Shown here in pieces: positions 8,401-56,912 of a stretch of 64,000 nt of DNA; the first letter of the stretch is position 1, and every line of letters begins with the position of its first letter. A program made the position numbers and the translations under genes. The stretch comes from Anthoceros angustus. Lineage: Eukaryota; Plantae; Anthocerotophyta. The stretch covers positions 124,001-188,000 of the forward strand of contig MU008207.1 in the NCBI GenBank assembly GCA_010909165.1, given 5' to 3'. Below the pieces are notes generated by a model. The model was given only the letters and a program-made list of their open reading frames with translations, was not told the DNA's origin and ran no database searches.

Positions 8401-11400
8401 GTGTCCTGTGACTGGCGAATAGGACTCAAAAGAGTTTGTGTAGCGGATGTGTGATGTAGCTCCAGTCCAAGTACCAATATGGGTTTGTTGGCTTGATGAT
8501 GCCAAGCATACGGTGAGCGGTGGTGTTGAGGAAGATTGTTTCTTCACACGAGGATAGTGGTTCTATCATGGACAGGGAAGGACTTCTATAGAGATTTCCC
8601 TTAGACATTTGAATGAGCTTCTGGCTGTTAGGATGACCTAAATGACAATGCCAAAGTATGGTGTTGGAGGACGTTGCAAAATTTTGGGAAGCTACATGTA
8701 TCCTATCATGTAAGGGACCCACTTGGACAGACAGTTTGTATAACCCGTCCTCTAAAGTGCCTGAGCAGATGGTATGTGACTTACTCGGAAGATAAGAGAT
8801 AAGACAACTATCTGCGTTTAAAATGACTTGCATACTATGTTTCAGAACATAAGCTAGCAGCAGACACTAAGTTTTTACACATGGATGGTACATGAAGGAC
8901 ATGAGAGAGAGAGAGAACTTGGCCTGAAGAACATCTGAGAACGACGGAACCTACACCAGAGATGGGGAGGTTGTGGTCATCGCCAAGAGGGATGCTTTGG
9001 TGTCCTGTGTGATCGAATAGGACTCAAAAGAGTTTTGCTAGACAGATGTGTGATGTAGCTCCACCGTCCAAGTACCAATATGGGTTTGTTGGCTTCGATG
9101 ATGCGTGAGAGCTGATGATGTTGAGGAAGATTGTTTCACAACGACATGTGCTCCAGTGCGGCCTCCTTTCTAGGCTCGCCATTCTTCTTCTTATTTGCGT
9201 CCTTCTCCATATGATTCGGTATCGCACCAATTACAAATAACTCAATCTTCTTTTTACCTTTTGCGGTGTTGAAGAAGATGTAGATTCTCTATGAGGAGTT
9301 GATATATGGGCGAGAGGTGTTGGGTCTTACATGGCATGACCTCGGCCTCTACCTCTGCCTCTTCCGGTGAACATCACTTGCTATGCGGTGGGCAGTGTCG
9401 TGACGATGGCTGGAGTCCTCTGTATTATGGCTTCTATGAGTTCATTTGTCGATATCCAGCGTTGAGGAACCTTCAGATACCATTGCCTTCTATGCATTAC
9501 GGAGCATTTTGTGTTGTCACGATGGATATGGAAGGTGGTAGAGTGGATAAGAGATTAATGAATGCATTCTTTTGGAGATTTTCATGCTCTTTGCTTCAAG
9601 GTTATTTTAGCCAATCTAAAAGTACTAATATGGCTCTCAATGAAATCGTTTCTCTCATCTTGAAATTTGAAATTTTGGTGGTAGTCAATATGCTCATCAC
9701 ATCATTTGAAGCATATATTTGAGCAAGATATCATTTCCTTGGAGGTATTTGCTTCGAGACTTGTCGGACCATTGATTGATAAGTCCACTTATGATGATCT
9801 CTTGAGGCGTAAGTTTTTATTCTACGCCTTTCATCATTTTTGGAGGTGTGTATACAACTGTGAGTTGTTGAGCTATGCCTTGAGCTCGACAAAAATCATT
9901 AAAAGCATTTGATGTAAACTCGCCTCCATTGTCGGAACGGAGGATCTTGAGTTTCTTGTCTGCAAGTCTCTCCGCCCACATCAAGTCCGTAAAGTGCTGA
10001 AAAGCTTCACTTTTGTGTTTAAGGATGTATGTTGAGGTAAAACGGGAGAAATTATCAATGAAAGTAAGGAAGTATCTACAACCACTAAAGGATGGTGCAG
10101 AAACTGGGCCGCAAATGTCTGTGTGAACTAACTCAAGGGGTGCTTTAGCCCGCTGTGGAGGGTTATTATGAAAAGGTGCTTGGTGTCTTTTGGTTACAAC
10201 ACAAGCTTCACACCAGGATAGTGGTTCTATCGTGGACAGGGAAGGACTTCTATAGAGATTTCCCTTAGACATTTGAATGAGCTTCTGGCTGTTAGGATGA
10301 CCTAAATGACAATGCCAAAGTATGGTGTTGGAGGACGTTGCAAAATTTTGGGAAGCTACATGTATCTTATCATGTAAACCCACTTGGATGAGAGCAGTTT
10401 GTATAACCCGTCCTCTAAAGTGCCCGAGCAGATGGTATGTGACTTACTCGGAAGATAAGATAAGACAACTATCTCTGCGTTTAAAATGACTTGCATACTA
10501 TGTTCTAAACATAAGCTAGCAGACACTAAGTTTTTACACATGGATGGTACATGAAGGACATGAGAGAGAGAACTTGGCACGAAGAACATAGAAACAGCGG
10601 AACCTACACCAGAGATGGGGAGGTTGTGGTCATCGCCCAGTAGGACAGTTTGGTGTCCTGTGACTGGCGAATAGGACTCAAAAGAGTTTGTGTTGTGACA
10701 GATGTGTGATGTAGCTCCACTGTCCAAGTACCAATATGGGTTTGTTGGCTTCGATGATGCCAAGCATGCAGTGAGAGCTGATGATGTTGAGGAAGATTGT
10801 TTCTTCACAACGACATGTGCTCCAGGTGCGGCCTCCTTTCTAGGCTCGCCATTCTTCTTCTTGTTGCAGTCCTTCTCCATATGATTCGGTATTCTGCACC
10901 AATTACAAATAACTCTAATCTTCTTTTTACCTTTTGCAGGTGTTGAAGAAGATGTAGATTCTCCATGAGGAGAGTTGGTATATGGGCGAGAGGTGTTGGG
11001 TCTTCTGCCTTGGCCACGGCCTCGGTCTCTACCTCTGCCTCTTCCAGTGAACACCACTTGCTGTCTGGTGGAGCGAGTGTCGTGACGATGGCTGGAGTCC
11101 TCCTGTATTATGGCTTCTATGAGTTCATTTAAGCTGATATCCAGCGTTGAGGAACCTTCAGATACCATTGCCTTCTATGCATTACGAAGGACGGCATTTT
11201 GTGTTGTCACGAACGCCCGATAGGAAGGTGGTAGAGTGGATAAGAGATTAATGAATGCATTCTTTTCGGAGATTTTCTCGCCAGATGCTGCTTCAAGGTT
11301 ATTTTTAGCCAATCTAAAAGTACTAATATGGCTCTCAATGAAATCGTTTTCTCTCATCTTGAAATTCTGGAAATTTCGGGTGGCCGTCAATATGCTCATC

Positions 11401-31699: not shown

Positions 31700-32867
31700 A
31701 TGGCTAGCCTCGTCCAAGGCGCAGCGGCGGCAGCAGTAGCAGCGGCCATGACTGTGGACACCGCGCGGCCGCTGCAGGAGCCTCACTTTCTGGCTAGCGT
31801 TGGCCATGCCTGCTGCAGCAGCAGCAGCAGCGGTAGCGGAGGCGTCAGGAACACGGTGCCCTTCCCCTGGCTCGCCTCCACCACGAGGTTGAAGCGGGAA
31901 GCCAAGATGGCGAGGCGCATCAGCGCCATTCTCATGGAGGAGCGGGACAGCGGCAGCAGCAGCAGCAGCCCTACCAGCAGCAGCACCACCACGGCGAGCT
32001 TGCACCTGCTGTTCCAGCAACAGCAGGAGGCCAGCAGCGGCGCGCTGGACCTCAGGCTGGAGGCGGACGAGCTCTGGCTGGAACTGCGGCGCGAGGCGCA
32101 CGCGGAGTCGGAGGTGGAGCCGGCGCTGGTGAGCTACTACTACTCCACGGTGCTGGCGCATCGTTCTTTGGAGCGAGCTTTGGCGTTTCATCTGGGGAAC
32201 AAGCTGGCCAGCTCTACGCTGCTGAGCACGCAGCTCTTCAGCCTCATTCTGGACACTTTCTCGGAGGACAGCGGGATTCGCGACGCGGTTCGCGCAGATC
32301 TGAGAGCGGTGCGGGAGAGGGATCCGGCCTGCATCTCCTACGCGCACGCAATGCTGAATTTCAAGGGGTTCTTGGCGTGCCAGTCGCACCGGGTGTCGCA
32401 CCGGCTGTGGAATCAGGGAAGGGTGTCGCTGGCTCTGGCTATTCAAAGCCGGGTGTCGGAGGTGTTTCACGTGGACATCCACCCGGCGGCTACCATCGGC
32501 AAGGGCGTCCTGTTCGACCACGCGACGGGCGTGGTGGTGGGAGAGACGGCCACCATCGGCAGCTAACGTCTCCATTCTTCACCATGTCACGTTGGGAGGC
32601 ACAGGTGCTACACGAGGGATCGGCACCCTAAAATTGCGGATGGTGTCCTCATCGGCGCCGGAGCTACCATTTTAGGGAACATTCGGGTTGGGAGTGTGCT
32701 AAGATCGGGCTGGCTCTGTGGTGCTCATTGATGTTCCTCCTCACACCACTGCAGTAGGCAATCCGGCGCGCGTTGTCGGAGGCGGGAAGCACGGCACCGC
32801 AACAAAAGCTAAAGAGCCTCCCAGTGAGACCATGGACCACACTTCCTGGTCTGACTATGTTATTTAG
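31700..32867 (+). CDS. SAT: Serine acetyltransferase, duplicated copy; apparent frameshifts are probably sequence errors
   Basis: ADLRAVRERDPAC, FKGFLACQSHRVSHRLW, FHVDIHPAATIGKGVLFDHATGVVVGETA, and HPKIADG...DVPPHTTAVGNPAR...WSDYVI. Intronless. Indels at about 32562 and in G-runs at about 32616 and 32690-32710. Confidence 0.8.
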
Positions 32868-33143
32868 GTGTCTGCTAGCTTCACACCACAAGTACTGGGA
32901 ATCGAAAGCACACCTCGTGCTCCAGGAAAGTCATGTCAGAGCACGGACGCAGACTCGTGCGACAGACGCAGGCTCGTGCGACAAATTGTGGCAAGAGACT
33001 GTTTTTGTAGTCCATACTGTACAACTTACAATATTAATACTTGTCCACCCACTCCTACCTAGTCTCATTGCACTGCCGATTTCATGCTCCTCCTCCACCC
33101 TGTTCATCTTCACAAGACAGCCCACACCTGCGAACATTTGGCA

Positions 33144-34250
33144 CCAGCAGCGGCGCGCTGGACCTCAGGCTGGAGGCGGACGAGCTCTGGCTGGAACTGC
33201 GGCGCGAGGCGCACGCGGAGTCGGAGGTGGAGCCGGCGCTGGTGAGCTACTACTACTCCACGGTGCTGGCGCATCGTTCTTTGGAGCGAGCTTTGGCGTT
33301 TCATCTGGGGAACAAGCTGGCCAGCTCTACGCTGCTGAGCACGCAGCTCTTCAGCCTCATTCTGGACACTTTCTCGGAGGACAGCGGGATTCGCGACGCG
33401 GTTCGCGCAGATCTGAGAGCGGTGCGGAGAGGGATCCGGCCTGCATCTCCTACGCGCACGCAATGCTGAATTTCAAGGGGTTCTTGGCGTGTCGCACCGG
33501 GTGTCGCACCGGCTGTGGAATCAGGGAAGGGTGTCGCTGGCTCTGGCTATTCAAAGCCGGGTGTCGGAGGTGTTTCACGTGGACATCCACCCGGCGGCTA
33601 CCATCGGCAAGGGCGTCCTGTTCGACCACGCGACGGGCGTGGTGGTGGGAGAGACGGCCACCATCGGCAATAACGTCTCCATTCTTCACCATGTCACGTT
33701 GGGAGGCACAGGTGCTACACGAGGGATCGGCACCCTAAAATTGCGGATGGTGTCCTCATCGGCGCCGGAGCTACCATTTTAGGGAACATTCGGGTTGGGG
33801 AGTGTGCTAAGATCGGGCTGGCTCTGTGGTGCTCATTGATGTTCCTCCTCACACCACTGCAGTAGGCAATCCGGCGCGCGTTGTCGGAGGCGGGAAGCAC
33901 GGCACCGCAACAAAAGCTAAAGAGCCTCCCAGTGAGACCATGGACCACACTTCCTGGTCTGACTATGTTATTTAGGTGTCTGCTAGCTTCACACCACAAG
34001 TACTGGGAATCGAAAGCACACCTCGTGCTCCAGGAAAGTCATGTCAGAGCACGGACGCTCGTGCGACAGACGCAGGCTCGTGCGACAAATTGTGGCAAGA
34101 GACTGTTTTTGTAGTCCATACTGTACAACTTACAATATTAATACTTGTCCACCCACTCCTACCTAGTCTCATTGCACTGCCGATTTCATGCTCCTCCTCC
34201 ACCCTGTTCATCTTCACAAGACAGCCCACACCTGCGAACATTTGGCACCA
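33144..34250 (+). repeat. About 1.1-kb tandem re-duplication of the SAT 3' two-thirds plus downstream sequence
   Basis: Sequence from 32031 recurs at 33144; the junction lies in a shared CCAGC. Confidence 0.9.
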
Positions 34251-38537: not shown

Positions 38538-41500
38538 ATGAGAGCAATGCACAGCAACAGCAGCAGCGGCAGCATGGAATCTGGCGCAGACATAGACTTG
38601 GTGTCAGCATGCGCAGGCTATGCAGCGCAGTTGATCGACCAGGAGGAGGCACGGCTGGAGGTGCGGACCCGGTGCTCGCAGAGGCTGCGGCGGGAGCCGG
38701 AGCAGGCGCAGGCCAAGGAGCAGGAGGCGGACGCGAATGTGCTGGCCAATGTGGAATGGGCCGCGGACAGGCTGGAGGCGGCTCTGCACTTGGGCAACAC
38801 GCTGAGCAGCAGGGCCGCGCGGCTGGAGCATTGCCACAAGCTCCTCAAGGGAGCTGCCAGCGCGGGCATTCGCTACCTGGCGGCCTGGTCGCACCTTTAC
38901 CTGGCTCTGCTCTGCAAGCTGCGAGCGCGGGATCGCGCGGCCGCGGCTCACCTGCTGGACATGTTTGTGCTGGACCCTAGGCACGCGCGGCTGGATTTCG
39001 GCCCGGATCTCTGGGACCTGCTCTTTCTCCCGCACCTGTCCAACGTTCACGCCTGGTACAAGGCGGAGTGCGCCAAGCTTGCCGCGCACAGCGCCAGGAA
39101 AGAGCTCCTCGACAAGCTGTACCAGGAGACCTTGGATGACAACACTCGCCAGTATGCGCAGTACTACAGGGATCGGTTGAAGGAAGATCGGGACTACAGC
39201 CGCTCCACCTCCGATTCCTCTCTCACTCGCTCGCCGCCCGCTGCCGTCGATGCTGCCGCCGGGGGCTGGAAGGTGTCCACTAACAGCGTGTAAGTGTGGA
39301 CGCGTCTGCACATTCCGCGCGCCGTGCGGTTTGTCGGAACGCTCACGCTGCTGTTTGATTGCAGGTTTAACACTTCCATATCCTTCCAGGACGAAGACAG
39401 AGACGCCTCCCGAGAAGACGCCGCGAGAGATCTCTCCTCCTCGCTTGACATGTCCTTCAAAGAGGTGGGATAGGTGCGGCGTGCAACTGGCTTCTTCCTG
39501 CAGCTGTTGGGCTACTGGAGCTTGCGGCTTGACGGGCTTTTTCAATGTGATATGCAGCCTGAGGCGGAGGACAGCACCAGTCATGAGTCGGATAAGGGCC
39601 TTGTGGTTCATCCCGGCGGTGAGCAGGCACAGCGAATGACTTGGGACTATCCGGTTGATGGACGCCCTGGGGGCGGCTTTGAATCGCCTTCCACGTTTGA
39701 GTCTATTTCGGACAAGAGGATTGCATCAGCAGGTCTCGCATCTGGGAGGCTTGCTAAGTGGTCTGCTGCAGCTCGGGCACCTCGAGAACGGGAAGTGCTC
39801 CCGCAGCTAAGTTCTTCGGAGTCCAGTGATTACAGTGAGCTGGAGGTACTTTCTTCTTCGATTATCACAAGTCTAGCGTCTTCGCTCTGTTCAATGCCTC
39901 TGGGACGTGTTTTGCGGCAGAGTTTAATAGAAGCTTTACTGGAATGGACAGGCTAGACGTCACCGTTTCGTAGAGGGGCGTGGAAGACACGGTCAGGATG
40001 AGGTCCAGTCCCTATCAACCGGCCTGTCGAATCTCAGGTCTGTTGAGCAGGCGTCGCTGTTGGACTTTGTCATAACGTTAGCAGGAGCTGATGGCTCCTC
40101 TTCCTCTGGATGATGCAGCACAGAACCGGCTGAAAGAAAGTCAGTCCGCACCCACCACCCCCACCTGCAACAGCAGCATCAACAGCAGCAGCGAAGGCCC
40201 TCCTCAGAGTTGGGCCATATCAAACCGCCTAAGCATTTTGTTTGCCCTATAACACACGAGCTTTTTGACAACCCGGTGACGCTGGAGACGGGGCAGACTT
40301 ATGAGCGATTCGCAATACAGGACTGGCTTGATCAAGGCAACAAAACTTGCCCCCTCACTCAGCAGACACTGACCAACCTCAGTCTGCCTCAAACCAACTC
40401 CGTGCTCAAGGGGCTAGTGGATGCTTGGAAAGAGCAGAATCCTGAAGTTGTTCTGGAAGACCTACCGAGAGATCCTTCCATCGAAGACTGGAATGTGACC
40501 ACTTTTCCTGATCGGAATGGGGTAATCGACCGTGGTCAGGTGCCACAGACTCGAGCCCGGTTGGAAGCGGATGCCCATCCACCTTACTCAAACATGGATA
40601 CCCTACTCACTGATCTGCAGGATGCTGTCTCCTCACTGTGCTCATTGGATGCTGAATTGTCCGAGCTGGAAGACGCTTCGCTAAGGCTTGCCCGTGTCTG
40701 GGTACGCTCTGAAGGTGACGAGGAAGTGGAAGTATCGCTGTTGAACGTGGCTTTGGTGGAGAGATTGATGCACTTGTTGTCAGTGTCAAGTTCAGACATT
40801 GTTTTGCGGACCACTGTGTGCTTGCTCTGTGAGCTACTGGAGCGGAATGACTTCATCCACAAAACGATAGTCGAATGGGATCCACATTTGAAGGTCCTGA
40901 TGCACGTCGTTACCCTAGGTTCTGTCCCGCAGGTGGCAGTTTTGCTTTACTTGCTGAAGGAGTCACCTATGCAGCAAGAATATTTTAAGGGCCTGCCCTG
41001 TTTTGTTGATACCCTGAAAGATGACATTCTTCAGGAGGAAGGGGCTTTTGATGTTTGCTGGACTCCAAGAGCTGCAGCTGCATTTTTGATTGAGGAGATG
41101 GTAACGATGTTCGACCATTCTGTGAACATGGCAGTTGCTGTGCAACTTGTCAATCTTGGGGCTATTCCAGCTCTCATATCCAGTCTCCACTCAACTGTTA
41201 TGGAGGAGAAGATAAGTGCTGCAACGATCCTTCGAAGTTGTATACAAGCAGATGGAAGCTGTCGCAATGCTGTGGCTACTGGTTGCAAAACATCATCCAT
41301 CGTTGAGTTGCTACACTGTAACAAGGGGAAAGCCATGACGACGGCTATTTCTCTCCTGTTCGAGCTTATCCAGTTGGACAGGTGTGCATGCTGTTTGTGG
41401 CCGTGTCACCTCCTCCTCCTTGTGGGACAAGTTCATAATTGTAGCACTTGACATTGGAGCTTTTCATTTGTTACTAGGAGGTCGATTGTTACCAGGATGC

Positions 41501-44697: not shown

Positions 44698-45862
44698 CTA
44701 AATAACATAGTCAGACCAGGAAGTGTGGTCCATGGTCTCACTGGGAGGCTCCTTAGCTTTTGTTGCGGTGCCGTGCTTCCCGCCTCCGACAACGCGCGCC
44801 GGATTGCCTACTGCAGTGGTGTGAGGAGGAACATCAATGAGCACCACAGAGCCAGCCCCGATCTTAGCACACTCCCCAACCCGAATGTTCCCTAAAATGG
44901 TAGCTCCGGCGCCGATGAGGACACCATCCGCAATTTTAGGGTGCCGATCCTCGTGTAGCACCTGTGCCTCCCAACGTGACATGGTGAAGAATGGAGACGT
45001 TATTGCCGATGGTGGCCGTCTCTCCCACCACCACGCCCGTCGCGTGGTCGAACAGGACGCCCTTGCCGATGGTAGCCGCCGGGTGGATGTCCACGTGAAA
45101 CACCTCCGACACCCGGCTTTGAATAGCCAGAGCCAGCGACACCCTTCCCTGGTTCCACAGCCGGTGCGACACCCGGTGCGACTGGCACGCCAAGAACCCC
45201 TTGAAATTCAGCATTGCGTGCGCGTAGGAGATGCAGGCCGGATCCCTCTCCCGCACCGCTCTCAGATCTGCACGAACCGCGTCGCGAATCCCGCTGTCCT
45301 CCGAGAAAGTGTCCAGAATGAGGCTGAAGAGCTGCGTGCTCAGCAGCGTAGAGCTGGCCAGCTTGTTCCCTAGATGGAACGCCAAAGCTCGCTCCAAAGA
45401 ACGATGCGCCAGCACCGTGGAGTAGTAGTAGCTCACCAGCGCGGGCTCTACCTCCGACTCTGCGTGCGCCTCGCGCCGCAGTTCCAGCCAGAGCTCGTCC
45501 GCCTCCAGCCTGAGGTCCAGCGCGCCGCTGCTGGCCTCCTGCTGTTGCTGGAACAGCAGATGCAAGCTCGCCGTGGTGCTGCCGCTGCTGGTAGGGCTGC
45601 TGCTGCTGCCGCTATCCCGCTCCTCCATGAGAATGGCGCTGATGCGCCTCGCCTTCTTGGCTTCCCGCTTCAACCTCGTGGTGGAGGCGAGCCAGGGGAA
45701 GGGCACCGTGTTCTTAACGCCGCCGCCTCCGCTACCGCTGCTGCTGCAGGCCGCATGGCCAGCGGTAGCCAGAAAGTGAGGCTCCTGCAGCGGCCGAGCG
45801 GTGTCCACAGTCATGGCCGCTGCTACTGCTGCCGCCGCTGCGCCTTGAATGAGGCTAGCCAT
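44698..45862 (-). CDS. SAT: Serine acetyltransferase with an Ala/Ser-rich N-terminal extension; one apparent frameshift at about 44950
   Basis: ORFs 44936-45862 and 44698-44982 join to a complete SAT (DRHPKIADGVLIGAGATILGN...WSDYVI) if the G-run in CGAGGATCGG is really four G. Confidence 0.9.
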
Positions 45863-46040: not shown

Positions 46041-47625
46041 ATGCTGCGGATCGCGAAACCCAAGACCAAGCGAGGGGCTCGCGCTTTGGAGAAACGAGCT
46101 CCAAAGACCGTAAGCTTGCTAGCTCCTTGCGAGCCTCATGTTGTTGGATTCGTGAACTTAGATGAGGGTCTGGCATAATTGTGGTGTGTAAATCCGCAGG
46201 AGGAGAATGTGAAGAAGTTGATGCTTCTGCATGGTACCAAGGTTAGCAGCACAGTGAAGGCAGTGATTTCTGACCTGTATCATCTGAAGAGGAGCGATGG
46301 AAACGCCATTAAATTCTCCAAGGACAATGGCAACGTGCGGCCGTTTGAAGGAGGGGGTGAAGCCCCTCTCGAGCACATGTCTCACAAGTCCGACTGCAGC
46401 TTGTTTGTGGTAAGCTGGATTTGGGGGAACTGGTTGGTCATGTCGTGTCTCATGCCTATGCAGGTCCTGGATGATGTGCCTCCTTGTTCTCTCCGTTCAC
46501 CTACTCATCCTGTCTGTCTGCTTTCACTGCTGCAGTTTGGGTCTCACTCCAAGAAGCGGCCTGATAACCTAGTTCTGGGCCGGATGTTTGACCATCACTT
46601 GTACGACATGATTGAGCTAGGGGTTGAGGACTTCAAGTCTATTGATTCACTTGGTGGTGGCAGAAAAGCTGCTCCTCAAGAGGGGTCAAAACCTTGCTTC
46701 GTCTTTATTGGTCAAGCTTTTGAATCTCAGCCACAGTTCCGGCAGCTCAAAGAGATGCTTATCGATTTCTTCCGGGGTGAGGTACTGTTCTAATTGTTGC
46801 TGGTTGAGTTAGGTTATGCGTTAGGGCAATGAAGAGACTAGTATCACACGTTTCATTCGACCACCTGATCGTGACGGGTTTGTATTATCCGCCAGGTTGT
46901 GGAGGTCATCAATCTCAGTGGTCTGGATCGAGTGTTTGTCTGTGTAGCAACTGCTAACAAGGTATTCTTATGGGTCCTGACGCACCGGTGCTTAGTCCTG
47001 GGAGACTAACCTGTCCGGCAGTTTCTGATTACTATTTGGTGCGTTTGCCTGTCCGTTGTCGTTTGTGTGGCAGGTGCTTTTCAGACATTGTGCTATAATT
47101 CAGAAAAGCTCTAACTCTGAAGTTCCTCTCATGGAATTGATAGAAGTTGGTCCATCATTCAACATGACCCTTAGGCGGAATCGCCTAGCAAGTGATGACT
47201 TGAAGAAGGTGGCCATGAAGGCTGCTTCTAAGTCAGCCAAGAAGAAGGTAAATCGTCAGTTTGTGTTCATAGGTGGCAGAGATTTGGGACCAAGATGTAT
47301 GACCTTGAACTGCCATTTCCGATCTGTCCAGGTGAAGAACGTGAGTGCAGACCCGTTAGCTGGCAAGGTTGGCCGGATCTACATGCCAAAGCAGGAGGTA
47401 TGTTACATTGTGGACAGCTGTGTGCTTTTAAAGCTCGCCCATTAGGTTCGATCTGTTATGAATGATCACAATCTGTGTTTCCTGCAGGTGGATGGCATGG
47501 CCCTGGCAAAAATGAAGGGACTGAAAAGAGAGCGCAGGCAGGCTGCAGCCGTCAAGAATTTATCGGTGGCATCAGAGGACGTAACTATAGAGGGTGCTGC
47601 TACTAAGAAATCTCGAACTCAATAG
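46041..47625 (+). CDS. RPF2: Ribosome production factor 2 homolog (Brix domain), multi-exon
   Basis: [82 protein letters not shown], and GKVGRIYMPKQE. Confidence 0.93.
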
Positions 47626-48078: not shown

Positions 48079-50991
48079 TTATTTCTCAAAATGCTTGTCA
48101 TCCCCAACCAGAAAACTAAGCACCAGTCCATCCATGTCTGTCCACCAGGTCTGGCCTGGCTGCTTCCATGCCTTGTTTCCTTTTCTCCTCGCTTGCACCT
48201 CCTCTGCCTGTTCCCACATTTCGGCACCCGTGTAAATACTTGACATCAACACATATGCTGCAGCATCATTCTTGTCTTGCTTCACTGCTCCATCGAAAGC
48301 ATGGCGTCCTACCTCCACATTGCACCACTTTCGACAAGCACCCAAGAGGGTGTGCCAAACTGCAGCATTAGGCAGTACAGGCATTGTCCTAACCACAGCT
48401 TGTGCCTCGCACAGTCGACCTGCACGGCCCAGGAGATCAACCATGCATGTGTAGTGATCCACCGTGGGAGTGATGCCATATTGTCTACTCATAGCCTCAA
48501 AATACTGTCGCCCCTTGTCCACTAGTCCCGAATGACTGCACACTGTTAGTACGCAAAGAAATGTGGTGCTGGCTGGCTGTATGCCATCTCCTCTCATTCT
48601 GTGAAACAGGTCGAAGACCACTTCGCTTTCTCCTTGACGAGCGTAGCCGGAAATCAGTGCATTCCAGGCTACAACATCTCTGTGAGGCATGTCTTCAAAC
48701 ACTACCAGTGCATCAACCATGCACCCCGATTTTCCATACATGTCTATCAAACTCACGGCTATGAGCGCATCAGCTTCCAGCCCTTGGTCTTTAATCTGTG
48801 CATGAAGCTGCCTCCCCAGATGCAAAGCTGCAATATTTGCACATGCCTGCAAGAGACATACGAATGTCACAGAATCAGGTGCAACGAGGCCTTCTTCTTG
48901 CATAGCCCTGTGAAGTTCAAGGGCTTCCTGCCCCATGCCCCTCTGGGAATACCCTGCAATCATGGCATTCCAGGACACCACAGTTTTTTCAGCAAGTCTG
49001 TCAAATGCACCCTGAGCTGCCTCTAGGCTGCCACACTTAGAATACATATTTACCAAACTGTTGGCTACAAACGCATCAGTTTGGAGTCCTCTTTCTCCAA
49101 TCTGGTCATGAAGCTCCTTCCCCTTCTCCAAACCCAGGTTGCCCAGAATTGCACATGCCTGCAGCAGGCACACAAATGTCACAGAATCAGGTGCAACCAT
49201 TCCTTCTTCTTGCATAGTCCTGTAGAGACGAAGGGCTTCCTGCCCCATGCCCTTCTGGGAGTAACCGGCTATCATGGCATTCCATGTTGCCACATTCTTT
49301 TCACCAAGTCCGTTAAACATGCCCTGAGCATCCTCTAGGCTACCACACTTTGCATACATGTTTACCAAACTGTTGGCTAGAAACCCATCAGTTTGAAGCC
49401 CTAGTTCTCGAATCTGTGCATGCAGGTGCTTACCAGTCTCCAAAGCCGTGATACCGACACTTGCACATGCCTGTAGGAGGCACACAAATGTCACCGAATC
49501 CGGCGCACTCATGCCTTCTTGTTCCATAGCACTGTAAAGATGAAGGGCTTCCAGACCCATGCCCTGATGGGAATATCCTGCTATTAGAGCAGTCCATGTG
49601 ATGACATCCTTCCGGGGGAGCCCAGCAAACACTCTTTGCGCATCTTCCAAGCTACCACATTTTGCATACATGTTCACAACACTCTTGGCTACAAGCACGT
49701 CAGCCTGAAGCCCTTTTTCTCTAATCTGTGCATGGAGCTGCCTCCCATTCTCCAGAGCCTGGGTGCCAATAGTTGCACATGCGTGCAGGAGGCACACAAA
49801 TGTCACAGTATTCGGTGCTGCCAAGCCTTCTCGCTGCATAGCACTGTAAAGACGAAGGGCTTCCTCACCTATTCCTAGCTCAGAATATCCTGCTATCAGA
49901 GCAGTCCATGTCACCACATCCTTGTGAGGAAGTACGTCAAACATTCTTTGAGCATCTTCCATGCTGCCACACTTTGCGTACATGTTCACCAAACTGCTGG
50001 CTACAAACACATCAGCTTCCAGCCCTTGTTCTCTGATCTCTGCATGAAGCTGCTTCCCCTGCTCCAAAGCAAGGGTGCTGCCCACACTGGCACAAGCCTG
50101 CAGGAGGCACACAAATGTCACAGAATCGGCTGCAACCATGCCCTCTCCTAGCATAGCCTCGTAGACTTGAAGGGCTTCCTGCCCCTTGCCCTGCTGTGAA
50201 TACCCTGCCATCAACGTGTTCCAAGTTACCACATTCTTTTGCCCAAGTCCGTCAAACACCCTTTGAGCGTCTTCCAAGCTGCCACACTTCGCATACATGT
50301 CTACGAGGGAGTTACAAACAAACGAATCAGGTTGAACTCCACTAGCCAAGACATCGGCATGCAGCTGATGCCCGGTTCTTAAGTCTTTTCCCTTTGCACA
50401 AGCCTGAAGGGCTGCAACAAACACATGACCATCTGGCTTCACACTTGACATGCGCATTCGATGATACAGTTGTACGGCCTGCGTATCGTGTCCGTGTTTA
50501 ACGTGTGCAGAGATTATGGAAGACCACATGAAGGCATCTGGTGTGCAATCCTCTTCACACACATCCATGGCTTCTCGCAAGCTGGCATGATGAGAAGCAT
50601 ACATTCGCAGGATATGGTTGCACAGGAACGTGTCCGACTCATAGCCCCCTTTCAAAGCGAGAGCATGCACACGACGACCCAGAATAAGATCACTCTGAAC
50701 CGCACGGTTTCTGAGCACAGCATAGAAAAGAGACTGGGAAATTCGACTGTCTGTCTGCTCCTGCACCAAAACTCCAAGAGCCTCAACAGCCTCATGGAGC
50801 TGGCCCCGCTGACATAGTTGGCTCACGGCTTCAGCTGTCATGCCCCTTGGGTATCCTCCAGGCCTGCCCACACGTTGGGCTCGAGAAGGCGGGCCAGCAG
50901 AGGTGTTGCCGGAGCATCTCTTCTGCCACCCAAGTGCCCTGCTCTGCCCTGTCGCCCTGTGTGGATGAAGTGCAAGGCGCCAGGCGGCCAT
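48079..50991 (-). CDS. PLS-class PPR protein, E+-type with WW-variant box, no deaminase active site (970 aa)
   Basis: Repeated P-L-S motifs, E motifs (HYTCMVDLLGRAG, YVLMSSIY), and ending KQPGQTWWTDMDGLVLSFLVGDDKHFEK*. No HxE or CxxC. Confidence 0.93.
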   Translation of the reverse strand: MAAWRLALHPHRATGQSRALGWQKRCSGNTSAGPPSRAQRVGRPGGYPRGMTAEAVSQLCQRGQLHEAVEALGVLVQEQTDSRISQSLFYAVLRNRAVQSDLILGRRVHALALKGGYESDTFLCNHILRMYASHHASLREAMDVCEEDCTPDAFMWSSIISAHVKHGHDTQAVQLYHRMRMSSVKPDGHVFVAALQACAKGKDLRTGHQLHADVLASGVQPDSFVCNSLVDMYAKCGSLEDAQRVFDGLGQKNVVTWNTLMAGYSQQGKGQEALQVYEAMLGEGMVAADSVTFVCLLQACASVGSTLALEQGKQLHAEIREQGLEADVFVASSLVNMYAKCGSMEDAQRMFDVLPHKDVVTWTALIAGYSELGIGEEALRLYSAMQREGLAAPNTVTFVCLLHACATIGTQALENGRQLHAQIREKGLQADVLVAKSVVNMYAKCGSLEDAQRVFAGLPRKDVITWTALIAGYSHQGMGLEALHLYSAMEQEGMSAPDSVTFVCLLQACASVGITALETGKHLHAQIRELGLQTDGFLANSLVNMYAKCGSLEDAQGMFNGLGEKNVATWNAMIAGYSQKGMGQEALRLYRTMQEEGMVAPDSVTFVCLLQACAILGNLGLEKGKELHDQIGERGLQTDAFVANSLVNMYSKCGSLEAAQGAFDRLAEKTVVSWNAMIAGYSQRGMGQEALELHRAMQEEGLVAPDSVTFVCLLQACANIAALHLGRQLHAQIKDQGLEADALIAVSLIDMYGKSGCMVDALVVFEDMPHRDVVAWNALISGYARQGESEVVFDLFHRMRGDGIQPASTTFLCVLTVCSHSGLVDKGRQYFEAMSRQYGITPTVDHYTCMVDLLGRAGRLCEAQAVVRTMPVLPNAAVWHTLLGACRKWCNVEVGRHAFDGAVKQDKNDAAAYVLMSSIYTGAEMWEQAEEVQARRKGNKAWKQPGQTWWTDMDGLVLSFLVGDDKHFEK

Positions 50992-51359
50992 AGGCCAACG
51001 CTGGAATCCTGGAGCGTTGCAAAATCCAGCTCCAGTTCGAATGTTTCAAGCACAAATGCGCACATGGGTGTGCATCCTGCGCTGCATGATTGCGCAACCC
51101 GTTGCGGTAGCCCTCCAATGCTGGACACATATCTGGAGAACATGGAGGACACGAAAGCAGGTCGCTAGAGTTATACCTCGGGAAAGAATCAGCTACATTG
51201 CTGCAACGTCTGCTTGCAATGGGTCAAAATGTTACTGGTCGACAGACATCCTAGGGAGCCAGAAATCCGCCTTCTATCCTCCTATACGGTTATCCGTATG
51301 ACATATGAAACACTCAGGATTGCAGGCATCCAAGTGGAAATCATGTTGGCTCCGCCTAC

Positions 51360-54300
51360 CTACTTCCGGTCCCCACAGGAACAAGAGCCATCTACAAAAT
51401 GGTGCACGCAATGTGCATCTCGTACAATGATCTGCCGCTTTTCAATCCTGGACATGACCTTGGTGCCACTATGGCAGTCATCGCACATCCGCAAGTTTTT
51501 TGTGACTAACAAGGGTGTGCCGTCTGGAGTGTTGAGGAGACCGTAGGCCAAAGCGAGTTTCTCAGCATGCCCACACAAGGACAGGAAATCATCTTCCCGT
51601 CTGCCGTCGGACATGTGCCCTTCCACGCTCTTCAACTTGCAAGAGATATCATCCCCCTCTTGACCCACAACGAACTCATGGATGTCGCCTCTCTTCACCT
51701 CAATCCACGCCTTGGCAGGCTTCTTGCAAGCACCTGCACGCTTTCTTAGACTCTCTACCGTCTCTGCATCCCTCCACCTACCAAAATCTGTATACATATT
51801 TGCCGTCAGACTGTAGGCTGCCGCATGTTGAGCATCCACTCTAACCAGGTGGTCAAAGCATCGTCTCGCACGCTCTATGTCACCATGACTTTTGCAAGCA
51901 CTCAGTAATGATGTCCATCCCACTGTCTCATTCTGCAGTATTGCCCTACTGTGCAACATTTTCTCTGCTTCCTGCAGTCGCCCACATCGACCAAGAAGAT
52001 CAATCAGGCACGCATAATGCTGAGCTCTAGGCACAATCCCATGATCTTCCAACATGCTTTTGAACAGCTCTTCACCCTCATCCACCAGGCCCTCATGACT
52101 GCATGCCACCAGGAGAGAGACAAACGTGGCATCGTTGGGCTGCACCCCTTGCTTTTGCATCTCTTCCAAGCATTTGATTGCCATCCGGCTCCCATTGCAT
52201 TGGGCATAGCCATTCAAAAGAGCATTCCATGTAACCACATCTTTCCTTGGAAGCCCATCAAACACGCGGCGAGCATCCTCCAGACATCCACATTTTGCAT
52301 ACATGTCCACCAGGCTGCTCCCCACAACAACGTCAGCATCGAGCCCAAGCTTCTCTATCTGGGAATGAAGCTGCTTTCCGTGCCATATAGCTCCTATGTT
52401 GGCGCAAGCTTTGAGGAGGCAAACCAGTGTAAAATCGTCTGCAATACACATGCCCTCCTCTTGCATCCTGACATACAGCTTGAGCGCTTCCTGCCCAAGC
52501 CCATGCTGAGCATACCCTCCAATCATGGCCGTCCATGTCACCACATCTTTCATAGGCATGCGCTCAAACACTCTGCAAGCGTCCTCTGGACTCCCGCACT
52601 TTACATACATGTCCACCAGGCTGTTGCCAACCACTAGATCACCCCCCAGTCCTCTTTCTGTAATCTGGGAATGAAGTTCTTGACCTCGACATAAAGCTCC
52701 AACGCTGGCACAAGCTTTCAGAAGGCACACAAATGTTACAGCATCGGCCCTGATAATGTCATCGTGCTGCATTCTTTCATACAACAAGAGGGCTTCGTCC
52801 CCAAGCCCCTGCTGAGCATATGCTCCGATGATGACATTCCATGTCACCACATCTCGCACCGGAAAACTGTCAAACACTCTGCGAGCACTCTCTAGGCTGC
52901 TACATTTTGCGTACATGTTCACCAGGCTGCTGACCAAATCACCTTCCATACCCCTCTCCTGCACGCGGAGATGAATTTCTTTACCTTCATGTAAGGCACC
53001 AACGAGAGCACATGCTTTGAGAAGGAGCACGAACATGGCATGATTGGCCTGAGTCATGTCCTCCTCGTCCATGCTCGCATAAATCTGAAGGGCTTCTCGA
53101 CCGAGACCATGCTCAACATATCCTGAAATCATGGCTGTCCATGCCCCCGCGTGTCTTGTGGGCAACCTGTCAAACAGGCTGCGAGCATCATCCAAGCTCC
53201 CACACTTCCCATACATGTCTACCAGGCTGCTGCAAACAGCCATGTCAGCCTCCAGTCCTCTTTCTCGGATCTCAGTGTGGAGCTTCTTCCCTTCCTGCAA
53301 AGCCCTGATGCTGGCACACCCTTTGAGCAGGCATGCGTAGGTCACGTGATTGGCTTCTACTCTCCCACCGTCCTGTTGCATTAGCGCATAGAGAAGAAGA
53401 GCTTCCTGAGGCAGCCCATGCTGGACGTATGATGCAAGCATGGCATTCCAAGTGACCACACTTCTCGTGGGCAGTGCGTCAAAGACCCGACGAGCATCTC
53501 CTATGCTCCCGCACTTTCCATACATATCTAAAAGGCTGGTGCCCACAACGACATCAATATCCAGGCATCTCTTCCGAATATCAGCATGGAGCTCCTTGCC
53601 CTCCTGCAAAGCGCCAATGCTTGCACATGCTTTCAGCAGACAAACGAATGTCACGCTATCGACTGGTGTGAGGCCCTCCTGCCTCATACCTGCATACAAA
53701 TCCAGGGCTTGCTGGCCCAATCCATGCTGAGCATACCCTGCGATCATGGCAGTCCACGTGACCACATCCTTGGTGGACAGCGTCTGAAACACTCTGTGGG
53801 CATCCTGCAAGCTCTCACATTTGGCATACATGTCCACCAGGCTGCTTCCAACGAACACGTTGGGCTCGGTCCCAGCAGCGACAACATGAGCATGGACCTC
53901 CCTGCCTGATGCCAAGTCCGCTAAGCAGGCACACGCTCTGAGAACTGCCACAAACGTGTAGTTGTCGGCCTTCACATTGGACTGCAGCCTCATGCGTCGG
54001 TACAGCTGAATGACCTGAATGGGCTGTCCGTGTTCAGCATGTGCCGAGATGATGGAGGACCAGGAGGAAGTGTCGGGCGCAGGCAGACTGGTAAACACTT
54101 GCAAGGCCTCCTGCAACCTTCCATGAGCAGCGTACATGCGGATAAGGTGGTTGGCCAGGAACGTGTTGGATTCCAAACCCCTTTCAAGAGTAAGAGCGTG
54201 AACACGCCTGCCCGCAACCAGATCTCTGCTTGCTGTGCATCCTTTGAGGAGGCGAGAAAAGAGGGATGAGGGAACATAGGACTGTCGGTGCACCAGGATG

Positions 54301-54494
54301 TCCAACGTTTGCACAGCATCCCCAAGCCGTCCCGACTCACACAGTTGACCACAGGTTGCAATCTCCACAGGCCCAGGCACAGGCACAGGATGGTGAGTGG
54401 GAGCAGCTCGATTTCCGTCCACCAACGCCGACCGCACCAAGGCTTCCCAGCTTCTGCTTGCCCTACTGCTGCCCACATGCCTTTTAAGGCTCAT
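51360..54494 (-). CDS. PLS-class PPR RNA-editing factor with DYW:KP-type deaminase domain, C-terminus DRK (1044 aa)
   Basis: KKPAKAWIEV in place of the PG box, CGHAEKLALAYGLL, TKNLRMCDDCH, and HHFVDGSCSCGDRK*. Confidence 0.93.
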   Translation of the reverse strand: MSLKRHVGSSRASRSWEALVRSALVDGNRAAPTHHPVPVPGPVEIATCGQLCESGRLGDAVQTLDILVHRQSYVPSSLFSRLLKGCTASRDLVAGRRVHALTLERGLESNTFLANHLIRMYAAHGRLQEALQVFTSLPAPDTSSWSSIISAHAEHGQPIQVIQLYRRMRLQSNVKADNYTFVAVLRACACLADLASGREVHAHVVAAGTEPNVFVGSSLVDMYAKCESLQDAHRVFQTLSTKDVVTWTAMIAGYAQHGLGQQALDLYAGMRQEGLTPVDSVTFVCLLKACASIGALQEGKELHADIRKRCLDIDVVVGTSLLDMYGKCGSIGDARRVFDALPTRSVVTWNAMLASYVQHGLPQEALLLYALMQQDGGRVEANHVTYACLLKGCASIRALQEGKKLHTEIRERGLEADMAVCSSLVDMYGKCGSLDDARSLFDRLPTRHAGAWTAMISGYVEHGLGREALQIYASMDEEDMTQANHAMFVLLLKACALVGALHEGKEIHLRVQERGMEGDLVSSLVNMYAKCSSLESARRVFDSFPVRDVVTWNVIIGAYAQQGLGDEALLLYERMQHDDIIRADAVTFVCLLKACASVGALCRGQELHSQITERGLGGDLVVGNSLVDMYVKCGSPEDACRVFERMPMKDVVTWTAMIGGYAQHGLGQEALKLYVRMQEEGMCIADDFTLVCLLKACANIGAIWHGKQLHSQIEKLGLDADVVVGSSLVDMYAKCGCLEDARRVFDGLPRKDVVTWNALLNGYAQCNGSRMAIKCLEEMQKQGVQPNDATFVSLLVACSHEGLVDEGEELFKSMLEDHGIVPRAQHYACLIDLLGRCGRLQEAEKMLHSRAILQNETVGWTSLLSACKSHGDIERARRCFDHLVRVDAQHAAAYSLTANMYTDFGRWRDAETVESLRKRAGACKKPAKAWIEVKRGDIHEFVVGQEGDDISCKLKSVEGHMSDGRREDDFLSLCGHAEKLALAYGLLNTPDGTPLLVTKNLRMCDDCHSGTKVMSRIEKRQIIVRDAHCVHHFVDGSCSCGDRK

Positions 54495-54517
54495 CGGCCT
54501 CGACTTCAGCAGCCTCT

Positions 54518-56611
54518 ATGGCCGAGGTGTTGGTGTTGCCAGCGCTGGTTCTGGTCAAGCAGCAACAACAAGTAGCACAAGAGCAACATTCGAGGTTATC
54601 TGTGCACGGATATGGCAATAGCCGGCTATACACGGAAGGGAGGCGGAATCAGCAGGAGAGGTGTCGAGCCACAGGCTCATGCACTCCCTACTTGATGCAA
54701 CACGAGACATCGTCAGCATCCAGCAGCCGGCCCAAGGTAGCCACACGACTGGAGCATCATCAAGGAGCTGGGGAGGATTCCATCCTGGCAAGGCATTGTG
54801 AGCAGGGACAGCTGAAGGAGGCTGTGGAGGCCTTGGACCTTCTGGTGCAGCAGCGAGCATGTCAGATCAGCGAGCTGCTCCTGTATCGTGTCATCAAGAT
54901 GTGCATGGCAGAGCAGAATCTTGGTCTGGGGATGCGGGTGCACGCTCTTGCATCCACCGGTGGGTACGAAAACAACGCATTCTTGGCCACCCACTTGGTT
55001 GCCATGTACGCTTGTCACGGGAAGCTGCAGCAGGCGGTCCAGGTGTTTGCCAAAGTGACTGCCCCAGATGCCCATCTATGGGCCACCATGATATCGGCTC
55101 AAGCTCGACATGGGCAGCCCAAGCACGCCCTGCAGCTGTATGGTCAGATGAGGAAGTGTGGCACGAAGTCCGACAGCCATGTGTTCGTGGCAGTGCTCAC
55201 GGCTTGTGCCGCAGCACAGGATCTGGTTTTGGGCAAGGAAGTGCATGCCCACATTCTTGCCTCTGCCAAGGGCACCATGAACAGGTTCGTCGGCAGCAGC
55301 CTGGTGAACATGTATGCGAAATGCGGGAGCTTGGAGGACGCCATCCATGTGTTTGACAGCTTGGACTCCAGGGATGTGGTGACCTGGAATGCCATGCTCG
55401 CAGGGTACATGCAGCAGGGCCTCGGCCGGCAAGCTCTGGCTCTATATGCCAGGATGCGGCAGGAGCATGCCATGCCGGGGGCAGCCAACACGGTGACGTT
55501 TGTCTGCGTCCTCCGAGCTTGTGGCAGCGTGGGAGCCCTGCAGCAGGGGAAGCAGCTCCATGCACACATCCGGCAGAGAGGCCTGGAAGCTGATGCCACG
55601 ATTGGCAGCTGCCTGGTCGACATGTATGCCAAGTGTGGGAGCTTGGAGGATGCTCGCAAAGTGTTCGACAGACTGCCCTCTCGAGATGTGGTGACATGGA
55701 ACGCTCTGCTCAACGCCTATGCTGAACATGGCAAGGGAGACCTGGCTGTGCAGTGTTTTGAGCACATGCGTGGGCAGGATGGCATCGTGCCCGACCTCAC
55801 CACCTTCAGCTCTCTGCTTGTGGCATGCAGGCATGCCGGTCTGGTGCATGAAGGAAAACGCTATTTCGCCATGATGGTGGCGGAGCATGCCCTATCGCCC
55901 ACCGACTACCATTACAACTGCATGGTTCATCTTTTAGGGCAGGCAGGCAGCCTGGATGAGGCCGAAGACATGCTGCACACCATGCCATTCGAGGATCAGG
56001 TCATTGGGTGGACGTCCCTGCTGACGGCATGTAAGACCCATGATGATGCAGAACGAGCAAAGCGATGCTATGACCGTCTTGTGGAGCTGGAACCTGACAA
56101 CGCCACGCCGTATGTCCTGCTGGCCAACATCTACGCAACAGCCGGCAGGTGGGAGGATGTAGATGTGATTGAAACCCAGAGGAAGGGTGCGGGCGCTTGG
56201 AAGAAGGCTGCAAAGGCGTGCATCGAAGTGAAGCAGGAGGTGCACGAATTCTGTGTGGGGCAGCAAAGCTCTGATATCGTCGTGGCATCCAAGCTCAGGA
56301 GCGTCAATACGAGGTTGAAGGAGGAAGGAGGGCATGTGCCACGGACAGAACTGGTGCTCAAGGCTGTGTCTGAGCAGCAGAAGGAAGATGCTCTGTGTGG
56401 GCATGCTGAGAAATTGGCCCTGGCTTTTGGCCTTCTCAACACTCCGGACGGCACCCCTCTCATAGTGACCAAAAATCTTCGCATGTGCAAGGACTGTCAC
56501 AGTGGCACTATGGTGATGTCCCATCTCGAGCAGCGATCCATCATTGTGAGAGATATTCACCGAGTACACCGTTTCGTGGATGGTAGTTGCTCGTGCGGGG
56601 ATTGGCACTGA
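54518..56611 (+). CDS. PLS-class PPR RNA-editing factor with DYW:KP-like deaminase domain, C-terminus DWH (697 aa)
   Basis: KKAAKACIEV, GHVPRTELVLK, CGHAEKLALAFGLL, TKNLRMCKDCH, and HRFVDGSCSCGDWH*. Confidence 0.93.
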   Translation: MAEVLVLPALVLVKQQQQVAQEQHSRLSVHGYGNSRLYTEGRRNQQERCRATGSCTPYLMQHETSSASSSRPKVATRLEHHQGAGEDSILARHCEQGQLKEAVEALDLLVQQRACQISELLLYRVIKMCMAEQNLGLGMRVHALASTGGYENNAFLATHLVAMYACHGKLQQAVQVFAKVTAPDAHLWATMISAQARHGQPKHALQLYGQMRKCGTKSDSHVFVAVLTACAAAQDLVLGKEVHAHILASAKGTMNRFVGSSLVNMYAKCGSLEDAIHVFDSLDSRDVVTWNAMLAGYMQQGLGRQALALYARMRQEHAMPGAANTVTFVCVLRACGSVGALQQGKQLHAHIRQRGLEADATIGSCLVDMYAKCGSLEDARKVFDRLPSRDVVTWNALLNAYAEHGKGDLAVQCFEHMRGQDGIVPDLTTFSSLLVACRHAGLVHEGKRYFAMMVAEHALSPTDYHYNCMVHLLGQAGSLDEAEDMLHTMPFEDQVIGWTSLLTACKTHDDAERAKRCYDRLVELEPDNATPYVLLANIYATAGRWEDVDVIETQRKGAGAWKKAAKACIEVKQEVHEFCVGQQSSDIVVASKLRSVNTRLKEEGGHVPRTELVLKAVSEQQKEDALCGHAEKLALAFGLLNTPDGTPLIVTKNLRMCKDCHSGTMVMSHLEQRSIIVRDIHRVHRFVDGSCSCGDWH

Positions 56612-56750
56612 CATCACACAGAGACATGGATCCAGTAATATTAAGAGTTATGGACAGACGGAGTCGTCCGTCCACCAGATGGAGCAGGTCCGTCACCGGA
56701 CAACCCTGCCGCATGTATACACTGTACAGTAGGAACAATTATATACCCCT

Positions 56751-56912
56751 CGGGGGCTTTAGACTAGGAAAGACCAGCTTATCTCCGGGGGGGCTTTAGA
56801 CTAGGAAAAACTAGCTTAGGTATCTCCGGGGGGGCTTTAGACTAGAAAAAAAGGAGAAAAACCAGCTTACCTCCCTAGGGGGCTCTAGACTAGGACAACT
56901 TATCTCCCTAGG
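56751..56912. repeat. Short tandem repeat, about 35-45 bp, 4-5 units
   Basis: Recurrent GGGGGCTTTAGACTAGGAAA..CAGCTTATCTCC. Confidence 0.85.

Follow-up and report, generated by a model that had tools for sequence, protein, structure and literature searches.

The window analysed here, a 64,000-nucleotide stretch of the genome of the hornwort Anthoceros angustus (assembly GCA_010909165.1, contig MU008207.1, positions 124,001 to 188,000 of the forward strand), carries between positions 48079 and 56611, counted from its first letter, three open reading frames (ORFs) for pentatricopeptide repeat (PPR) proteins of the PLS class, which we call G1, G2 and G3. All three are intact and intronless. An earlier reading of the DNA letters, hereafter the original prediction, had placed a cluster of three PPR genes in this interval, and the uninterrupted ORFs bear this out.

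G1 (48079..50991, minus strand) encodes 970 amino acids (aa) with about 23 PPR-like motifs followed by E1 and E2, and by its ORF, Pfam matches and motif parse it is an E+-like gene without a deaminase core. G2 (51360..54494, minus strand; 1044 aa), whose frame is kept in related taxa, and G3 (54518..56611, plus strand; 697 aa) are, by ORF and Pfam, PLS-E-DYW:KP genes that end in DRK and DWH, respectively. The G2 stop and the G1 start lie 368 bp apart, and G2 and G3 form a head-to-head pair, their divergent ATGs separated by a 23-bp spacer (54495..54517, assigned to neither strand). At the start of the G3 ORF (54518-54695), the first 59 codons do not have the look of a presequence, and Met60, at 54695, is a possible real start; a start at that codon would leave about 200 bp free, which may serve as a bidirectional promoter shared by G2 and G3.

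In each of the three proteins P-L-S triplets are followed by P2-L2-S2, E1 and E2, the arrangement of the PLS class, and Pfam found PPR, PPR_2 and E_motif matches in all of them (E-values down to 1e-111). The DYW_deaminase family (PF14432), on the other hand, was matched among the three ORFs only in G2 (1.9e-29) and G3 (2.3e-33).

Deaminase domains of G2 and G3

The DYW:KP domain of G2 (51363..51725, minus strand; 121 aa) reads KKPAKAWIEV...HAE...TKNLRMCDDCH...CSCGDRK. Its HAE (51561..51569, minus strand) would supply the zinc ligand His and the catalytic Glu, and its KNLRM-CDDCH string (51471..51500, minus strand) holds the equivalent of Lys88, the KP-specific Met92 and the CxxC zinc ligands. 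The domain of G3 (56201..56608, plus strand; 136 aa) is complete; it opens with KKAAKACIEV, carries HAE at 56402..56410 and KNLRM-CKDCH, with Lys88, Met92 and CxxC, at 56471..56500 (both plus strand), and ends in DWH. The boxes, the HAE signature and the two tails quoted in the original prediction match these translations exactly. Both domains have a KPAxA-type box instead of the PG box (KKPAKAW in G2, KKAAKAC in G3), both lack the xHP tripeptide, and both show the KP-type Met in KNLRMC. All 13 columns that are invariant among 60 aligned DYW domains are kept in G2 as well as in G3, and the zinc sites that define PF14432 are present in the two proteins: HxE(x)nCxxC and a second site formed by the His of CxxCH, H..F and CxC. 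A natural variant without the residue that synthetic enzymes need for U-to-C editing was also encountered: the transcriptome ORF P0026 is KP-like, with HVE for HAE, Thr in place of the active-site Lys (TTNLRMC) and a C-terminal extension.

When the last 198 residues of G3 served as query in a word search, the best matches were unnamed proteins of public assemblies with the pattern KKPAKACIEV...HAE...CxDCH...CSCGDRH, at 60-72% identity; proteins with a GRP tail came second, and seed-plant proteins of the HSE...DYW type appeared only below about 50% identity. The nearest relatives of G2 and G3 represent the DRH and GRP types described for hornworts. Over the C-terminal 200 residues G2 and G3 share 58% identity with each other.

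Subclass profile hidden Markov models (HMMs) were built from 34 HAE (KP) and 133 HSE (PG) domains. Against these models, for which sequences had been assigned to KP or PG from their HxE signature, no curated classification being used, G3 scored 222.6 bits for KP and 153.3 for PG (+69), and G2 188.8 and 122.3 (+66). In held-out controls the difference, KP minus PG, ran from +35 to +82 for KP members and from -39 to -65 for PG members. An excess of about 67 bits is still far above what one residue can contribute. Maximum-likelihood analysis of 82 domains grouped the HSE (PG) domains in a clade with 99% support in the Shimodaira-Hasegawa-like approximate likelihood ratio test (SH-aLRT), and G2 and G3 fell outside it, among the DRH and GRP domains, where the tree is poorly resolved. 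Subclass HMMs and phylogeny were among the checks proposed with the original prediction; both put G2 and G3 with KP, and the grouping with PG or WW domains that would have spoken against it was not seen. To judge from their domains, it is nearly certain that G2 and G3 belong to the DYW:KP class.

Within this class, the DRH proteins found as nearest neighbours make G2 and G3 DRH-like variants. The original prediction held their tails to be unusual, which the relatives show to be overstated: among the 34 HAE proteins we found DRH, DAH, VDH, DSP, DRY, DHH, DRP, GRP and others. Because such variation is common there, DRK and DWH are best regarded as minor variants. DYW:KP proteins are confined to hornworts, lycophytes and ferns (PMC9478123, PMC13386178), and those of hornworts fall into the subgroups DRH and GRP (Ichinose et al. 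2022, PMC9478123). With the hornwort DRH subgroup G2 and G3 share the PLS-E1-E2 arrangement, the KKPAKAxIEV box, the missing xHP, HAE, TKNLRMC, CxDCH and CSCGD; they differ from it in the tail (DRK or DWH instead of DRH) and in the length of the domain, which is typically about 133 aa in KP proteins.

At 51612..51623 (minus strand; E-G-H-M in the protein) alignments place a deletion of 12-13 residues of the gating-domain beta-finger. The missing part corresponds to HVPxTELVLKxV in relatives, together with the end of the preceding helix, and lies just upstream of HAE. From the box to HAEKLA, G2 has 58 residues, the shortest distance of the 60 domains; typical KP domains have 70-71 and most PG domains 73-75, and in G3 this stretch is 2-3 residues longer than in its relatives. 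We considered whether the deletion had removed a core beta-strand of the deaminase fold and rejected this, the segment being the gating-domain finger. In OTP86 the gating domain spans H837-G891 and the beta-finger residues 870-891 (PMC7611903); this finger is largely absent from G2. Shortened fingers also occur in the HAE proteins P0024, P0029, P0031, P0032 and P0036 (63-67 residues from box to HAEKLA), and in these alignments the gating finger seems to vary more among KP domains than among PG domains.

An AlphaFold2 (AF2) model of the G3 domain has a mean predicted local distance difference test (pLDDT) of 94.3, and superposes on the structure 9kfx with a template modelling (TM) score of 0.93 and a root-mean-square deviation (rmsd) of 1.5 A. 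The known DYW:PG structures, namely OTP86 (7o4e, 7o4f), DYW1 (7w86) and a synthetic PPR-DYW protein with RNA (9kfx), share with G3 the fold and the two zinc sites; unlike it, PG domains of this kind have the PG box, HSE, Val for Met92 and a DYW tail, and act from C to U.

Conservation and origin of the cluster

Public reads were compared over G2, G3 and their flanks, using runs from three organisms, A, B and C. In run X1 (organism A) the locus was identical, with no difference. Organisms B and C have colinear copies of G2 and G3 at about 93-95% identity (5-7% of positions differ), and since one contig in each of them spans both 5' ends, the head-to-head order is shared. Their coding contigs are gap-free save for one in-frame insert of 18 or 12 nt, made of CAGGCC repeats at 54367-54373, where the N-terminal part of G2 is rich in proline and valine; the copies differ here in repeat length, within the presumed presequence. 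No gap was reported at the site of the beta-finger deletion, which indicates that the deletion is common to B and C.

The flanks have changed in another way. Within 360 bases 3' of the G2 stop there are four 1-base indels and one 7-base indel, and the substitutions, about 33 in 262 bases, accumulate at roughly twice the coding rate. Past the stop codon of G3 similarity to B and C ends within at most 5 bases. The indel pattern, used here in place of the ratio of non-synonymous to synonymous substitution rates (dN/dS), is thus in-frame only in the coding contigs and frame-breaking in the G2 flank, which makes a good case that G2 and G3 are maintained, with selection acting on both reading frames.

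In the protein collection, from which the window's own proteins are absent, no orthologue was found, the identities reaching no more than 72% for the C-terminal domains and 54% for the PPR tracts. The PPR tracts of G1 and G2 are 52.6% identical, where the baseline to unrelated lycophyte PLS proteins is about 50%, and the C-terminal module of each gene is nearer to proteins elsewhere than to its neighbours in the cluster; together these values suggest that the cluster is old or did not arise by simple tandem duplication. The P2-E2 module follows the deaminase class. Comparison of PPR tracts and P2-E2 modules gave no signal for or against a recent tandem duplication or a swap of deaminase class between G1 and G2. 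Two of the closest KP relatives, P0012 and P0014 (L001 and L002; Logan sample SRR33208241), stand single among ordinary nuclear genes, outside PPR clusters.

RNA recognition and proposed function of G2 and G3

The PPR tracts were parsed manually into regular units of 35-36, 35 and 31 aa. The tract of G2 (51726..54269, minus strand) consists of L-S, six P-L-S triplets, P2-L2-S2, E1 and E2; the shorter tract of G3 (54872..56200, plus strand) has L-S, two P-L-S triplets and the same P2-L2-S2, E1 and E2; and that of G1 has L-S, six P-L-S triplets and P2-L2-S2. All three proteins also share an N-terminal module, C-x-x-G-x-L-x-E/D-A-V-x-x-L-x-x-L-V, in the 60-70 residues before the first S motif; relatives of the DRH, GRP and WW types have it too, at 45-55% identity, and it is common to the classes.

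The recognition code was read from the fifth and last residues of the P and S motifs, with S2 aligned to position -4. The predicted upstream sequences, written 5' to 3' and ending at -4, are aUGnGGnRYgRAnGUnUGnGYnA for G2, nGGnGYnGUrn for G3 and nUGnYUnGAnnGnYUnYUnnYnA for G1. Since the three differ, three different sites should be served.

We propose that G1, G2 and G3 are nuclear-encoded site-specificity factors for RNA editing in organelles, to which they would be targeted. Each PPR tract would bind a defined stretch of RNA that ends 4 nt before a single pyrimidine, the base on which the C-terminal domain would then act. With all zinc ligands, the catalytic Glu and the active-site Lys kept, G2 and G3 would most likely edit in reverse, from U to C, each at a site of its own, and G1 would only bind RNA, requiring a deaminase in trans if it edits at all. 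Taken as a whole, with RNA targets and catalysis predicted from the proteins, this is the reading we favour, and we hold it to be probable, if by no means secure. Its parts differ in strength: U-to-C editing by G3 is plausible and has the better part of the likelihood on its side, and for G2, most of whose finger is lost, the odds of a normal enzyme are lowered and the same function is doubtful.

What is known of synthetic enzymes bears on this in part. The only KP domains in which U-to-C activity has been demonstrated are those of three of seven consensus designs: KP2 and KP3, of the GRP type, and KP6, of the fern type (PMC9478123, PMC11845758, PMC11332814). Lys88 is essential for U-to-C editing in synthetic KP enzymes, and Met92 replaces a valine of PG domains (PMC11845758, PMC9478123). 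KP2, KP3 and KP6 share with G2 and G3 the class, HAE, Lys88, Met92 and CxxC; they are consensus designs of other KP subgroups, whereas G2 and G3 occur naturally and are of the DRH type. The DRH subgroup, attributed to Gerke et al. 2020 and Gutmann et al. 2020 as these are cited in PMC9478123, was the basis of the designer enzyme KP1, and this design is absent from those active in Escherichia coli (PMC9478123). The statement in the original prediction that synthetic KP domains have been reported to catalyse U-to-C editing thus stands for the GRP and fern types and does not extend to the DRH-based design; its naming of G2 and G3 as native reverse-editing candidates is upheld by their class and weakened by the missing finger of G2 and by the record of DRH-type design.

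Several points weigh against the reading we favour. G2 and G3 belong to the KP subgroup with the least-supported activity, that of KP1, and neither ends in the DRH that gives the subgroup its name. The KP and PG reference sets, as said, were defined by the HxE signature itself. The AF2 model of the G2 domain has a mean pLDDT of 82.8, which drops below 50 at residues 61-65, in the area of the deletion, and it fits 9kfx poorly (TM 0.67). Replacement of OTP86 residues 875-890 by three glycines markedly lowered editing (PMC7611903), and G2 has lost 12-13 residues of the corresponding finger. The read runs that hold the locus look like genomic DNA, the X1 contigs tiling intergenic DNA at flat depth, and are silent on transcription. 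Finally, we know of no native KP protein that has been shown to edit.

The alternative that draws most on these points is that G2, G3 or both are KP by sequence and do not act from U to C, being instead C-to-U enzymes, bidirectional enzymes, or modules for RNA binding or scaffolding, with G2 perhaps catalytically dead and kept for its binding to RNA. The absence of KP1 from the active designs agrees with it, as does the behaviour of the fern-type KP6, which runs both reactions and whose direction single changes switch (PMC11845758, PMC9478123); for G2 in particular, so do the shortest box-to-HAE distance of the set, the weaker model and the effect of the OTP86 finger deletion. It has to reckon, however, with catalytic and zinc residues, Lys88 included, that are all present in both proteins, and with a deletion that is found in the related taxa too, in a G2 whose frame and remaining deaminase domain are intact, which suggests that the domain is still in use. 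In an RNA-bound PG structure, moreover, the gating region contacts the E2 motif, and alanine changes there had little effect (PMC13324415); KP proteins have also been reported to match U-to-C sites through the PPR code (PMC9478123). On balance we consider this alternative unlikely, though it has to be taken seriously.

The G1 gene and the significance of the locus

The DYW-domain portion of G1 is a stub (48082..48165, minus strand) of the WW type, KQPGQTWWTDMDGLVLSFLVGDDKHFEK, followed by a stop codon; it opens with the box KQPGQTWW and amounts to 28 residues in all. No HxE or CxxC was found in the G1 protein, Pfam gave no match to PF14432, and tblastn found no deaminase remnant 3' of the gene in any frame; a deaminase hidden downstream or in another frame was thus rejected. 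The P2-L2-S2-E1-E2 module of G1 is closest (55-65% identity) to proteins with a WKxPGQSWWTD box, and three of these, P0229, P0256 and P0287, have a full HSE...CxxC domain with the tails DFW, NYW or DYW. Six other relatives of G1 end 40-98 residues past the box, several of the closest at 40-60, and G1 keeps less of the DYW domain than these truncated relatives do.

G1 therefore has the PGQTWW box of a WW-type DYW:PG protein and none of the remainder; what it does have is the form of an E+ protein, PLS-E1-E2 with a DYW domain that breaks off after the PG box. The WW label follows what we take to be the formal definition of that group, together with the relatives found. Flowering-plant E+ proteins make use of a DYW domain supplied in trans. 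The E+ form is enriched in hornworts, according to a 2026 survey of 364 genomes (PMC13386178), and like the E+ PLS proteins described there G1 ends shortly past the box. Judged by its box and its relatives, G1 is a truncated, E+-like form of the WW-type lineage of the C-to-U class.

The original prediction had counted a WW-type factor in the cluster and had seen in the locus a possible source of editing in both directions, with the KP genes acting from U to C and a WW-type deaminase from C to U. The first part holds for the box and not for a catalytic core, which the stop after 28 residues cuts away. The second draws on that same box and on a P2-E2 module that groups with WW-type proteins, the full-length ones of which carry HSE...DYW; against it, a G1 without HxE and CxxC would perform no deamination by itself, and with no remnant downstream an autonomous G1 enzyme is refuted. 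No C-to-U deaminase is encoded by G1, editing in both directions is not supported, and we regard such a two-way locus as very unlikely. A further possibility, which the truncation of G1 and the deletion in G2 might suggest, is decay: in a genome rich in PPR paralogues, at least one of the three genes could be a degenerating copy that is not expressed. This is highly improbable given uninterrupted ORFs of 970, 1044 and 697 aa and, in two related taxa, only in-frame indels in the coding parts of G2 and G3 beside a frame-breaking flank.

Elsewhere in the window the neighbours are ordinary plant nuclear genes and a retroelement fragment. The N-terminal domain of serine acetyltransferase occurs in two ORFs, 32773-33738 and 44936-45862, on opposite strands and about 11 kb apart; an exon of a U-box/LIN-like E3 ligase lies at 40210-41451 and a Brix-domain ORF at 46179-46793. 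The ORF at 10356-11168 contains a retroelement Pol beta-barrel domain (PF22936) and is probably a transposon fragment. On the 3' side of G3 (56612-56900), the direct repeat GGGGGCTTTAGACTAGGAAA occurs twice in a span of about 45 bp, and a small inserted element may lie here.

Hornwort proteins of the KP, WW and E+ types are already in the literature, and the locus, one of very many PPR editing loci, leaves the current picture unchanged; the conserved beta-finger deletion of G2 is its only feature of some interest in its own right. One interpretation of this deletion is that evolution has kept G2 as a working KP deaminase that has no need of the gating beta-finger, a minimal and possibly non-autoinhibited U-to-C editor, which we consider improbable though worth stating. 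Since the KP genes G2 and G3 are intact and conserved and their PPR code can be read, they are natural candidates for the first demonstration of U-to-C editing by a native protein, G3 being the clean one of the two. The natural finger deletion of G2, kept across related taxa, could in turn show whether the finger is needed for reverse editing; if G2 does edit without it, the finger would be dispensable for this reaction, and G2 would offer a template for smaller synthetic editors.

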